DNA of 64,000 nucleotides. Source: Octopus sinensis (taxonomy: Eukaryota). The translations under genes were made by a program, and so were the position numbers. Below the pieces are notes generated by a model. That model searched no databases and was not told where the DNA came from. It saw nothing but the letters and a program-made list of their open reading frames with translations. The stretch covers positions 32,984,001 to 33,048,000 of the forward strand of contig NC_043014.1 of NCBI RefSeq assembly GCF_006345805.1, given 5' to 3'. Numbering within the stretch: the first letter of the stretch is position 1; every line of letters begins with the position of its first letter. Below are positions 11,763 to 57,615 of the stretch, in pieces.

Positions 11763-11787
11763 ATGGAAAATAAAGCTAATAATACAG
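11763..11787 (+). CDS. Putative first coding exon (MENKANNT-G/D) of the BCL11/ZNF296-related zinc finger gene
   Basis: ATG GAA AAT AAA GCT AAT AAT ACA G is followed by the donor-like gtacgt. The phase-1 end joins in frame to exon 29502 (G+AT = Asp). It lies at the end of a repeat-poor stretch of about 1.4 kb. There is no homology support, so this is inference. Confidence 0.5.
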
Positions 11788-13279
11788 GTACGTAAATTAT
11801 TTCATCACTATATTCCAATATATATACATATATATATATATATATATATATATATAATATATATATATATATATATATATATATATAATGTATTTACATA
11901 CAGTCATCTATATGCGTGCATGTTTTTGTTTGTTGTGCATTTAATCCTTTCTTATTGTGACACAAGGTGAACTATTCCTAACAGTAGTTTAATCCCAGGT
12001 TAACTCTGAAAGACTAGAAGTATAATCAAAAGCGTTCCAGCCATGAACATCCCCACTTTGTTTTTAGATTACATGTTGGACTACGCTTTCCAATGATCTT
12101 GTTTTAGATTGTAGAGTGTGATTTAAAGGAGATCTGTTATTTCTAGCAGATTGCTTGATCGCATAGCGACTATTGAGGTATAGGAAACTGCATTGATCCC
12201 TCTTGTGTATTAGTCATTGGCTCTTATTTTAGACAAACCTGCGATAATTTGAACTTGGAACGGAACAACAGGAATGTGTTTAACTCGATGCTTGTCACCA
12301 ATGTAATTTCTTGTAGATTATATTCATTTAGTTTTTAGAAGTGTATATGCCTGCATGCATGCATCTATGTATAATTTTAACTCTTACACGCAATTACATA
12401 CACGTGTGTATATACTTTATGCGACACACCCAAACAATTTATGGCGCGTGTTTAAAGTTTCATTATTGTCGGAGAGAAAAAGATGAAAAATATACTATGT
12501 TGAAACTAGTAAACAGGCCTTTGTCGATCCCCTCACTGAGAAAAAGCAATAATAAAATTCCTCATCTAAGTTCGTGTGCCATCATCCTTATGAATATTAA
12601 TGTAGATTAAACGACTTCAATATATCTTGTTCTGGTTTTTTATGTTGATATCCTGTATCAGTAAATTCCATGTCAAGTTCTCTTTCACACACACACATAC
12701 ATATGCATACACATTTTTTAGTTGTCCTTGTTTGACAAGTGATTTGATTTATTATTGTAATGTATGATGAAATGAAACAATTATATCAAGTGCAAATTGT
12801 TGTCCTCGTTAAACGCACACGGGCATTATATTCACTTTTACTTTGTTATGATTTCATAGTAAGTACCCAGCCAATCGACTGATCCCTACCCCTCCCTAAC
12901 AGTCTTGTGTCTATGTCATAAAAATCGTCGTTTTTCCGTAGTAATAATAGCAGTGTATATTAGAAGTCAAACTCTTTCATCGTATGACATTCCTGCCATA
13001 TTATATGGCAATAACAAATCATATCACAAAATCAACTTCTGTTCTGTGAATTAGAACGATATTTCCAACCCAGCAATTTTTTTACGTCAGCTCTGCTCGT
13101 GGTCTTTTCTTGACTACCACCAGCTCCCACCGTCGTTACAACAACCACACATTATCTTACTTTGCTTCCATGTCCCGTCCCCCCCAGTACATTGTACGCC
13201 ACACACCGTCGCACCTAATGCCACGAATGTACTTGCCACACACACAAACCACCCACATCTCTGTTCATGCTTTCACTTC

Positions 13280-13750
13280 CACTTGGAGCTCTGCACACAC
13301 ACACACACACACACACACACACACACACACACACACACGGAGGCTAAATATTTGAGTCACATATTAGAATGTATACTTGGATCCACAGATAGAAAGTTAA
13401 ATGCTTGTATTGTAAGGAGTCAGAGGAAAACACATACACTGTCCTCAATACATCAGCACATACACACTACCTTACTAACATCTCATACATACACAGGGCC
13501 CTGTCTAACTACATATATATACACATATACCCTACCCTCACTAGCATCTATCATAAACACACACACCACTTTTGCTACGGACAATCTACACATACACACA
13601 CTACTCTCACCTTATCTATGCATACTAACCTCACCACAATCACCCACGACCTTCATTCATCATACATACTCCACTCATTCATTACATGCACACTGCCCTT
13701 ACTCGCCACATACAACACAACACAAACCAAGGAGGGGACCACTGTGATTC
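13280..13750. repeat. (CA)n microsatellite and degenerate CA-rich tract
   Basis: Direct reading of the sequence. Confidence 0.85.
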
Positions 13751-13958
13751 TTTGACCTACTTGAAATAACAGTCTTTCCTTCATATCACACCCCATTGTC
13801 TTAACAGAGGAAAACTTTGGATCATGTACAATTACATACTTTTCCTAAAAAGACGGTATGATCATGGCTGGAAGGCTTTACATTGCATGTCTGCCAGGGG
13901 CTACCCAACAACACAAGGACAAACTACTCTTGCCTTACTCAGTCTTTACCTCTACTAT

Positions 13959-15140
13959 GATTTGATCCTAGCTATTTTAAGGACTTGCTTTCATCAGGAT
14001 AGGGCCTTGATGATAGTAAGATCAAACAACTGAGTAAGTTTGAGAGCTTGAGTTGTATGCTGCTCATATTTAGTGGGTGTATGGTGTGATGTTTTCTTGA
14101 TGTGAGTAGCATTTGTGTTTTCTTGCTATTGAAAGAGAAAAAGATACTTTCAAGGCCACTATTTGAGAGTATCATTCTCAACAAATAAGAACTTATAAAA
14201 AAACACTCAAAAACGTCTTTGACTTTTAGTAAAATTTTTGCTTATCTAACACTACAAACTTCCTTCGGCATATAAATCTATCAAAATTTCCTCCTTAGTG
14301 ACCATCAGTTCTGTTTCCTCAAAGCCAGATCCACAAGTGACCTTCTCTTGTTACATACCAGCCGGTGTTTGCTTTGGAGGAATTTGGGGAAAGTGATGTT
14401 GTCATTCTCAACATTAGTGTGACTTTGATCATGTCTTGCATGTAATTCTCCTATTGAAACTTTTCTACCTGTATGCTCTACCTATCTCTCATCTCTTGGA
14501 TCAGTAGCTTCCTACCGAATCCCCCTAGTATTGCATGTAATGATGGAGTTCTTTCTGTCCATTATTCTATCATCTTTGGCATACCTGAGGGTTCAGTTTT
14601 ATCGCTCACTCTCTTCCCTCTATACCTCAATGACTTACATGCTATCACATTCTACAACACTCACTCTTATACAAATAACACTACCCTTCATTCCTCCCTA
14701 ACATTCTCCATCTATGTTTTATCTACCCTCAACCCAGACACAAAATGCCAGGCATACACACCATAAATAGTGGCCTTGAAAGTATCTTCCTGTAGGTATA
14801 TGCCAACTTTTTCTCTTTCAGTAGCAAGAAAACACAAATGCTACTCACATCAAGAAAACATCACACCATACACCCACTAAATATGAGCAGCATACAACTC
14901 AAGCTCTCAAACTTACTCAGTTGTTCGATCTTACTATCATCAAGGCCCTATCCTGAGGAAAGCAAGTCCTTAAAATAGCTAGGATCAAATCCTTATCTTT
15001 ATAAATTCCTCTTCCATTCAGGGCCAGAAAAAATTTCAACCTCTAACAATTATTAATACTCTACAATGGGCTTCCACACAGTTTCCATCTACCAAATTCA
15101 CTCATGAAGCACTGTTTAACCTAGGACTATAGTACAAGAT
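13959..15140 (+). mobile_element. Decayed CR1/L2-group LINE reverse transcriptase fragment with an inverted duplicate of its downstream segment
   Basis: The 14473 frame reads IIFGIPEGSVLSLTLFPLYLNDL...HSYTNNTTLH, a decayed GVPQGSVL...LF...YADDT motif. The segment encoding FNSKKTQMLLTS occurs in both orientations (13959-14164 minus, 14765-14991 plus). Confidence 0.75.
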
Positions 15141-55880: not shown

Positions 55881-56344
55881 AGAAAGATATATATATATAT
55901 ATATATATATATAATAATACTGTAATTGTTCCATTGTTGTTGTTTTTTTGTTTTCCCGTTTGGATTATAATTATATATATATATATATATATATAAGCAT
56001 ATGTTTGGCAAAAAAAAAGAATGACCATCCTGAAATATAGCAATATATAGATAAATAAATATGGCCCAGTGGTTAGGGCAGCGGACTCGCGGTCATAGGA
56101 TCGTGGTTTTGATTCCCAGACCAGGCGTTGTGAGTATTTATTGAGCGAAAACACCTAAATCTCCACGAGGCTCTGGCAGTGGGTAGTGGTGATCCCTGCT
56201 TCTTTCAGTTTCCATCTACCAAATCCACTCACAAGCTTTGGTCGACCCGAGGCTATAGTAGAAGACACTTGGCCAAAGTTCCACGCAGTGGGACTGAACC
56301 CGAACCATGTGATTGATAAGCAAGCCACTCCTGCGCCTGAATAA

Positions 56345-56730
56345 ATATTATATATATAAATATAATATATATATAAATATAATATATATATATATATATA
56401 TATATATATAATATATATATATATATAAATATAATATTTATAAATATATATATATAAATATAATATTTATAAATATATATATATAAATATAATATATATA
56501 AATATAATATTTATAATATAATATTTATAAATATAATATATATAAATATAATATTTATAAATATAATATTTATAAATATATATATATATAAATATAATAT
56601 ATATAAATATATATATATATATAATATATATATATATATATATATATATATATTATATAATATATATATATATATATATTATATATATATATATATATAT
56701 ATATATATATATATATATATATATATAATA
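56345..56730. repeat. (TA)n with an ATAAATATAATATTT-type minisatellite
   Basis: Direct reading of the sequence. Confidence 0.9.
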
Positions 56731-57531
56731 TGTATGTGTGTGTGAAGCCCAGTGGTTAGGGTGTTGCACTCATGATTTGCAAGATTGTGGTTTTGACTCC
56801 CACACCAGGTAGTGTGTTGTGTTCTTGAGCAAAACACTTCATTTCACATTGCTCTATGATCATTTCAACATCTGGTGCAGAGCACTCTTCTGCATCTGTA
56901 CAGGTAATGTCAATTTGATAGAGGGTGTGGGCGTATGTGATCACAAACATTACATCAGATACATGCACATATGCATATGTGTGTATGTATATATTTTTTG
57001 GCGCTGGAGTGGCTGTGTGGTAAGAAGCTTACTTCCCAACCACATGGTTCTGGGTTCAGACCCACTGCGTAACACCTTGGGCAAGTGTCTTCTACTGTAG
57101 CCTTGAGTCGACTAAAGCCTTGTGAGTGGATTTCGTAGACGGAAACTGAAAGAAGCCCATCATATATATATATATATATATCTAGATATATATAAATATA
57201 TATATTTATATATATATATATATGTTGGTGTGTTTACGTTCCTGTAACTTAGCAGTTCAGTAAAGCAGAGTGATAGAATAAGTACTAGGCTTGCAAACAA
57301 TAAGTCCTTGGGTTGATTTGTTTGACTAAAGGCAGTACTCCAACATGGCCACAGTCAAATGATTGAAACAAGTAAAAGAATAAATATATATAGAGAGAGA
57401 GCACACACACAATGTGATTTCTATTAACCTCAGCACTCAACTTGTACTTTAATTTTATAAACTTGGCATGATAGAAGCGGAATTTGATGTTGCTGAGATT
57501 GAACTCAGATTCTACCTTTTCTTTTATATAG

Positions 57532-57615
57532 GTGTGAAGCCATTCAAATGTGGTCAATGTGATTATTCAACTGTAGAACGAAGTCATCTTAAAGTTCACA
57601 TTCGCATTCACACAG
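57532..57615 (+). CDS. Single C2H2 zinc finger exon (G)[27 protein letters not shown](G)
   Basis: Acceptor cttttcttttatatag, donor gtaaag, 84 nt, phase 1-1. Splicing to 38225 rebuilds a canonical HTGVKPF linker. No further exon was recognised before 64000. Confidence 0.93.

Follow-up and report, generated by a model that had tools for sequence, protein, structure and literature searches.

BCL11A and BCL11B, which regulate globin switching and the fates of lymphoid cells and neurons, have been studied intensively; recent work showed that their CCHC finger drives tetramerisation and controls the stability of the protein. The N-terminal MSRRKQ motif of canonical BCL11 and ZNF296 is a peptide that binds NuRD/RBBP4. 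Within BCL11A, Ile60 lies in the core of the tetramer interface, and the BCL11 fingers contact bases at positions -7, -4 and -1, counted from their first zinc histidine (PMC12006351). The T47P substitution in BCL11A is pathogenic. BCL11A/B read TG(N)CC-type motifs. Bcl11a/b have been called "putative paralogs" of Zfp296, which may itself oligomerise (PMC5622089). Here we describe a gene of Octopus sinensis that combines an N-terminal finger pair of this kind with a different set of DNA-contacting residues. Most of it lies in a stretch of 64,000 nucleotides (nt) of contig NC_043014.1 (assembly GCF_006345805.1, positions 32,984,001 to 33,048,000 of the forward strand), hereafter the window, to which all positions below refer. 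We put the probability at about 0.82 that the gene, most of which lies in the window, is real and expressed, belongs to a distinct, conserved branch of BCL11/ZNF296 proteins and coexists with canonical BCL11. As judged from its sequences, this family is a third branch of the BCL11/ZNF296 superfamily, so far found in molluscs and a nemertean.

Compared over 62,238 bases, the window and the O. sinensis chromosome record CM016876.1 are identical (0 mismatches), and all coding exons lie on the forward strand. Coding exon 1 (11763-11787) encodes MENKANNT and the first base of codon 9, ends at a GT donor and corresponds to the start of the RefSeq protein XP_029647491.1 (P0147), a 616-amino-acid (aa) "zinc finger protein 708-like" of O. 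sinensis. Exon 2 (29502-29624; 123 nt, phase 1 at both ends), located with tblastn, holds the CCHC finger; its first two bases complete the split codon, so that it reads (D)CDYLTCGRCLREFPLQNITNFIHHKKNDCDADTGDKSKNS. Exon 3 (36855-38225; 1371 nt) opens with (D)ALGRQLYCSSCTKAFLSAWEMLQHAQFTHKFKIFF and encodes the atypical finger ZnF1, a disordered middle region with the family motifs and the first C-terminal finger, F1, while exon 4 (57532-57615; 84 nt, phase 1) encodes a single finger, F2. AG acceptors are present at exons 2-4, GT donors at all four exons, and every junction is in phase 1. Joined, the four exons give 534 aa that are identical at 534/534 positions to residues 1-534 of XP_029647491.1. 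The remaining 82 residues have no match inside the window; they belong to a final coding exon 2.66 kb past its end (window-equivalent 66665-66912; AG acceptor, phase 1, TAG stop) that encodes fingers F3 and F4. For this reason a first-pass annotation, made from the window sequence by a model, saw two of the four C-terminal fingers; every peptide that it quoted is present in the window at the exon to which it was assigned. The introns measure 17.7, 7.2, 19.3 and ~9 kb, and a six-frame scan of the window found no further complete C2H2 finger belonging to the gene.

Support for transcription comes from a decapodiform (cuttlefish-type) orthologue (P0002) that is 55% identical, begins MEDKSNNTDCDYLTC and contains the same junction-spanning peptides. 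It occurs as one uninterrupted 1803-nt coding sequence on Logan contigs of 3.0-3.3 kb (index: 110 blocks of the collection), which implies spliced mRNAs in a related lineage. Even the tiny exon 1 has a conserved counterpart, MEDKSNNT, in the decapodiform mRNA contigs. On an unrelated metagenome contig (L007), a large exon is followed 1.4 kb downstream by a separate exon for finger 2, indicating that the intron between F1 and F2 is old.

The N-terminal CCHC finger, YLTCGRCLREFPLQNITNFIHHKKNDC (29510-29590; residues 12-38), has the spacing C-x2-C-x14-H-x4-C, which is present in 17/17 family members. Pfam PF25491 (CCHC_BCL-11A), which has a cut-off of 27 bits, matches residues 12-39 at 48.8 bits (E=7e-13), and among PDB entries the N-terminus has significant matches only to the BCL11A CCHC (ZF0) peptides 9BV0 and 9B4P (E=2e-4). 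AlphaFold2 (AF2) predicts a beta-beta-alpha fold for this finger, with a predicted local distance difference test score (pLDDT) of 80-86. Seventeen aa further on lies ZnF1, YCSSCTKAFLSAWEMLQHAQFTH (36875-36943; residues 57-79; C-x2-C-x12-H-x4-H), whose helix is of the (S/T)A(W)..L.H.Q..H type. This spacer is 11-27 aa long in the family and 19 aa in human ZNF296 (NP_660331.1, P0460) versus 71-203 aa in canonical BCL11. The first-pass annotation had taken a CCHC finger followed by a SAW-type finger as the hallmark of BCL11/ZNF296. The pair is indeed present by Pfam, PDB and spacing, but the SAW tryptophan is not a conserved part of it: across the family this residue is W, V or R, and Tubulanus has C-x4-C in ZnF1.

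Residues conserved in the family CCHC finger include the zinc ligands, the 14-residue loop, T14, the FPL motif, I27 and Phe30-Ile31. Of these, I27 is the counterpart of BCL11A Ile60, and Thr14 corresponds to the site of T47P. Because these features are retained, self-association through the CCHC finger is plausible. By hand count, the CCHC fingers of the two octopus proteins (family and BCL11) share 13/27 residues. An MSRRKQ-type peptide was found at none of the 17 family N-termini and in no frame of the window, while MSRRKQxxPQ is present in most of the canonical BCL11 N-termini compared.

The C-terminal array is preceded directly by a conserved lead-in, RKR(K/R)YPTSRP (38123-38152). Reading contact residues at the -7/-4/-1 positions of PMC12006351 gave Q, H and K for F1 (38153-38221), E, H and V for F2 (57543-57611) and Q, T and I for F3. 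F1-F3 are contiguous, with canonical TG(E/V)KP linkers; the fourth finger varies between members and is missing from some. Their helices are essentially invariant in the family (that of F3 is TAQNSTLKIH), and their contact residues are unchanged from octopus to Tubulanus, save the -1 position of F2 in two caenogastropods. The corresponding residues of octopus BCL11 are F, N and V in ZnF2, Q, K and R in ZnF3, N, N and V in ZnF4, Q, K and R in ZnF5 and V, T and K in ZnF6, so the family is unlike BCL11 in every finger. None of the canonical recognition helices (FQSNL(I/V)VH, Q(A/Q)SKLKRH, NCSNLTVH, QSSKLTRH and V(P/A)STLEKH) occurs in the family, and the canonical two-array layout, with ZnF2-3, a long acidic linker and ZnF4-6, is replaced by one contiguous array of three to four fingers. 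Since BCL11A/B read TG(N)CC with contact residues that the family replaces, it is reasonable to infer that the family would recognise a different motif. In the textbook C2H2 code, Gln at -1 reads A, His at +3 reads G and Lys at +6 reads G. By this code F1 would read roughly GGA, a prediction that we make with low confidence.

A homology search with the family protein found 111 proteins. Its named family members came from molluscs (cephalopods, bivalves and gastropods) and the nemertean Tubulanus, alongside transcriptome and metagenome entries, and the rest were generic zinc-finger proteins, beetle BCL11 matched through its N-terminal fingers and low-complexity matches. Two divergent members, P0059 (L006-L008: ERZ27247802, 3300027544 and 3300006913) and P0011 (L005: SRR19075496), carry the helix 'TPWSLLKHAQ.VHAL.IYLE'; their samples are metagenomes or transcriptomes, and with them the family's range may be wider than molluscs and nemerteans. 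The search is word-indexed and keeps targets of about 0.67-1.73 times the query length, so that a short domain query cannot retrieve full-length relatives. An 88-aa query returned canonical ZnF4-6 fragments 72-93% identical to beetle from Capitella, Elysia and Helobdella, and 85-96% identical from rotifers. A search with the Elysia fragment, filled mostly by giant poly-zinc-finger proteins, gave one useful match, a Biomphalaria BCL11 (P0261), which served as the full-length query for canonical BCL11.

The first-pass annotation had proposed looking for a separate canonical BCL11 in the same genome, and one was found. The P0261 query retrieved "B-cell lymphoma/leukemia 11A" of Octopus bimaculoides (P0326, 803 aa; XP_052827882.1 is cited for octopus), which has MSRRKQGKPQ, the CCHC finger, the SAW finger, ZnF2-3 (FQSNLIVH and QASKLKRH) and ZnF4-6 (NCSNLTVH, QSSKLTRH and VPSTLEKH), with a 9-aa linker before ZnF6. 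Its 90% cluster includes O. vulgaris CAI9729794.1 and O. sinensis XP_029642734.2. This O. sinensis BCL11 maps to a record of 77.5 Mb and the family gene to one of 55.4 Mb, that is, to different records of chromosome size. Both genes occur in at least 12 genera (Octopus, Pinctada, Potamilus, Sinanodonta, Mercenaria, Dreissena, Patella, Mya, Aplysia, Plakobranchus, Mytilus and Tubulanus), the Mytilus pair being drawn from different Mytilus species. In neighbour-joining (NJ) trees of the CCHC finger and ZnF1, 200/200 bootstraps separated the family from canonical BCL11 (molluscs, a nemertean, a brachiopod, arthropods and fish), and in 7/200 it grouped with the lophotrochozoan BCL11 proteins only.

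Several observations weigh against our conclusion and lend other explanations some room. Splice support within O. sinensis itself is the RefSeq model alone. The very long introns, the tiny first exon and the several alternative models in O. bimaculoides could point to an annotation artefact, a pseudogene or a merger of two neighbouring genes; we hold this to be very improbable, given a coding sequence that is contiguous on mRNA-sized contigs from many decapodiform runs, an intact reading frame, members from molluscs and a nemertean that are 31-59% identical overall and have invariant finger helices, and an exon layout kept on the independent contig L007. The NJ trees are unrooted and comprise ~58 columns, and the CCHC plus SAW-type pair and the collinear C-terminal triple finger are common to the family gene and BCL11, as would be expected if the former were the octopus's single, divergent BCL11 orthologue. 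That explanation deserves virtually no credence and can be set aside, because a full canonical BCL11 exists in the same species, both genes are found side by side across the taxa listed above and the two sets separate in every bootstrap. The taxon range, too, comes from one word-indexed search and does not establish absence from annelids, brachiopods or deuterostomes. That search yielded no family member in any deuterostome or ecdysozoan, which counts in turn against a third explanation, namely that the family is the lophotrochozoan orthologue of ZNF296, that the ZNF296/BCL11 split predates the protostome-deuterostome divergence and that the fingers were remodelled in spiralians. We regard this as possible, if doubtful. 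Most members tested have N-terminal modules that are reciprocal best matches with ZNF296: the octopus N-terminus aligns with the human protein in one 77-aa block over both fingers (43% identity, E=7e-17), ZNF296 outscores the other reference proteins compared for 4/5 members (63-70 bits, one high-scoring segment pair of 76-109 aa that spans both fingers), and a search in the other direction with the ZNF296 module finds family members best. The fifth, Tubulanus, gives 48.5 bits with tick BCL11 vs 48.1 bits with ZNF296. This single-segment advantage is mostly due to the short spacer, which is itself a likeness of the family to ZNF296. The ZNF296 CCHC finger is 58% identical to that of the family vs 49% to that of BCL11, but its ZnF1 has no such preference (42% vs 44%). 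A bipartition of the family with ZNF296 from BCL11 was recovered in 198/200 bootstraps, and ZNF296 with vertebrate BCL11 in 0/200; unrooted, however, this bipartition equates to BCL11 monophyly, and two fast-evolving lineages would give the same. A Mya arenaria member is already named 'ZN296-like' by one source. On the other hand, ZNF296 retains MSRRK and a 2+3 array of BCL11-type fingers, both absent from the family, and its fingers are much nearer BCL11 (109-120 bits) than the family (58-71 bits).

The ancestry of the finger array is ambiguous. Here the contrary evidence is that F2 is identical to a CTCF finger at 15/23 positions whereas its similarity to ZnF2 and ZnF4 is at the 2.6th percentile, that the F2-F3 pair matches a CTCF pair at 28/51 positions (BLOSUM62 score 166) vs 23-25/51 (119-123) for BCL11/ZNF296 pairs, and that a PDB search with the array ranks CTCF and ZNF568 highest and does not have BCL11A among its top 60. 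ZFP64 reaches 89 bits in a single stretch, and phase-1 introns split the fingers at HTG, a layout that permits shuffling. An exon-shuffled chimera, in which a BCL11/ZNF296 N-terminal exon pair was joined to an unrelated CTCF- or ZFP64-type array, would account for these likenesses, but we think it unlikely. BCL11 and ZNF296 have the same order of CCHC finger, ZnF1, long linker and terminal fingers. Profile alignment with hhalign places F2-F3-F4 in register with ZnF4-5-6 (probability 99%, 38% identity), including the non-TGEKP junction before the last finger, where a gap of 2 aa falls. F3 is closer to BCL11 ZnF5/ZnF3 (12/23 identities) than any of 193 background fingers (z ~4), and F1 is at the 99th percentile against ZnF3 in the same background. 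Units of 23 residues cannot tell convergence from descent, so these comparisons leave the ancestry unsettled. Descent with divergence nevertheless seems more economical than exon shuffling, and one hypothesis is that ZnF2 and the inter-array linker were lost while ZnF3-6 became F1-F4. The first-pass annotation had spoken of a paralogue or chimera with a BCL11 module and a non-BCL11 array. Paralogy is upheld by the separate BCL11 and the 200/200 split; a chimera is not needed, and although contact residues and helices differ in all fingers, 'non-BCL11' applies to specificity and not to ancestry, because the array is collinear with ZnF4-6 and F3 is ZnF3/5-like. As regards oligomerisation, which residue conservation makes plausible, the family helix starts with an ITNFI-like sequence vs the hydrophobic ILIFI of human ZF0; polar residues at the ILIFI positions also occur in invertebrate canonical BCL11.

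Between the two sets of fingers, the protein appears mostly disordered. The full-length AF2 model, used solely to tell ordered from disordered segments, has a mean pLDDT of 48 and a predicted template modelling score of 0.23, with order confined to the N-terminal fingers (pLDDT 68-86), the PKKRK helix, the VFSIP motif and the C-terminal fingers. In the alignment of 16 family members, three motifs stand out. The first, CCSSVLPKKRKQHIETSHH (37256-37312), has invariant C184, C185, P190, K191, K192, R193, H196 and H201 and is predicted to be helical (AF2 pLDDT 60-75). Its consensus is CCxxQxCGVTVIPGTHExLKKCCSAVVPKKRKRHME, of which cephalopods have the shorter form CCSSVLPKKRKQH, and profile-profile alignment placed no counterpart in BCL11; it may be a nuclear localisation signal or a zinc knuckle. 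The second, (T)IYID followed by acidic residues (37511-37546; consensus TIYIDxxP), may be a SUMO-interaction-like motif, and the third, SFILQPGTVFSIPFSY (37688-37735; consensus SxILxPGxVFSIPxSY; AF2 pLDDT ~63), may be a beta-strand docking motif. Exon 3 also contains a poly-Asn/Ser tract (37157-37213) whose length differs among O. sinensis, O. vulgaris and O. bimaculoides. It probably lies behind the naming of two O. bimaculoides isoforms as 'ras guanine nucleotide exchange factor Q'. A spurious 156-aa poly-Leu open reading frame (ORF; 36826-37296) runs over the tract on the other strand.

From these features we infer how the protein might work. It would be a largely disordered protein of ~616 aa comprising the CCHC finger, the atypical finger, the three motifs (CC..PKKRKxH, IYID plus acidic residues, and PGxVFSIPxSY), RKRRYPTSRP, F1-F3 and a variable F4, and would act as a sequence-specific transcription factor whose F1-F3 read ~9 bp unlike the BCL11 TG(N)CC motif. 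Self-association would be the role of the N-terminal finger pair, as it is of ZF0/ZF1 in BCL11A/B. Because the family is without MSRRKQ, any cofactor recruitment would be expected to proceed through its own central motifs. One may further speculate that the family protein hetero-assembles with true BCL11. A more far-reaching proposal is that the family is the spiralian ZNF296 lineage, in which CCHC plus ZnF1 acts as a portable oligomerisation cassette placed on a different, deeply conserved DNA specificity and perhaps hetero-assembling with BCL11; we offer it tentatively and think it rather improbable. Should it be true, hetero-assembly with canonical BCL11 might occur where both are expressed, for example in octopus neurons. 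If the family is the ZNF296 lineage, the BCL11/ZNF296 split was an ancient bilaterian event and not a vertebrate-only one.

The two ends of the gene may vary between transcripts. A pattern search located a candidate alternative first coding exon at 9814-9823 on the forward strand, 1.95 kb upstream of exon 1, which reads ATGACAAGCA followed by a GT donor and encodes M-T-S-(N); ~0.04 chance matches are estimated per 29.5 kb. Joined to exon 2 it would give MTSN-CDYLTC, the exact N-terminus of O. bimaculoides isoform X1 (P0001), and it would probably be an alternative first exon. Long TA/TATATA dinucleotide repeats flank the tiny exon 1 on both sides (11560-11625 and 11830-11890). Two predicted O. 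bimaculoides isoforms, P0148 (X4, 534 aa) and P0150 (X2, 589 aa), end after finger 2 and are without F3-F4; in the window, this end corresponds to the donor of exon 4, 57615. Such isoforms resemble BCL11A isoforms without ZF4-6 and, by analogy, could be competent to oligomerise but poor at binding DNA.

Repeats and a retroelement fragment account for the other features recorded, all of them intronic. In the 19.3-kb intron, an AT-rich imperfect microsatellite of ~5.5 kb occupies about 45300-51000 on the forward strand. ORFs of 100-250 aa at 45771-51001 were considered as a transposon and rejected, being microsatellite translations (MYIYIYV...). Within the microsatellite, a duplication with a period of 3293 bp (45637-46162 vs 48930-49455, 98-100% identical) is either a segmental tandem duplication or an assembly artefact. 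At 52759-53211 on the reverse strand, antisense to the gene, a 150-aa ORF matches Pfam RVT_1 (E=1.9e-10) and is a retroelement fragment, probably of the type without long terminal repeats; apart from this reverse transcriptase fragment, no other large ORF of the window had a Pfam match. An inverted repeat (43688-44033 and 44492-44837; arms of 346 nt, 99% complementary, 458 nt apart) looks like a young foldback element or one resembling a miniature inverted-repeat transposable element, and a direct repeat (54895-55194 and 55275-55574) is 98% identical between its copies.

The gene is already catalogued in RefSeq and UniProt as a predicted protein, and precomputed domain lists include PF25491. 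Database names for the family range over ZNF708-like, ZNF93, hunchback-like, Sp1-like, AZF1-like, ZNF579-like and RasGEF Q, and only the Mya arenaria member bears a "ZN296-like" name. The expectation that automated annotation would call the gene generic was thus borne out, as in 'zinc finger protein 708-like', 'zinc finger protein 93' and 'ras guanine nucleotide exchange factor Q'. We found no paper on the family, on PF25491 or on invertebrate orthologues of ZNF296. An octopus brain atlas lists one 'CG9650/bcl11a/b' gene, LOC115217234 (PMC9712504), which could not be mapped to either locus and by its name is probably canonical BCL11. Generic names hide the family in mollusc and cephalopod gene sets, and lists of "bcl11" genes in single-cell and evo-devo studies may miss or confuse the two genes. 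While the finding alters no general principle, an invertebrate paralogue that has the finger pair, other DNA-reading residues and no MSRRKQ is a natural experiment on the modularity of the oligomerisation cassette.

Among known systems, BCL11A/BCL11B (fly CG9650/Chronophage and worm BCL-11) have in common with the family a CCHC finger, an atypical finger, a long disordered middle region and a terminal triple finger in register. It departs from BCL11 in having neither MSRRKQ, a separate ZnF2-3 array nor an acidic inter-array linker, and in its four contiguous fingers, spacer of 11-27 vs 71-203 aa, contact residues (QHK/EHV/QTI vs NNV/QKR/VTK), C2H2 vs C2HC last finger, own central motifs and separate clade (200/200). 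With ZNF296/Zfp296 it shares the CCHC and atypical finger pair, the short spacer and the sequence 'LTCGRCL..FPL..IT.F..HKK', whereas ZNF296 keeps MSRRK, the 2+3 layout and BCL11-type helices (SNLKVH, SSKLNRH and SNLTVH). CTCF/ZFP64-type fingers ('C-x-Y-(A/S)') are alike in the identities of F2 and F2-F3 and in the best PDB matches, but the family does not have 11 fingers and its N-terminus and contact residues differ; this likeness is one of finger type and is no evidence of orthology.

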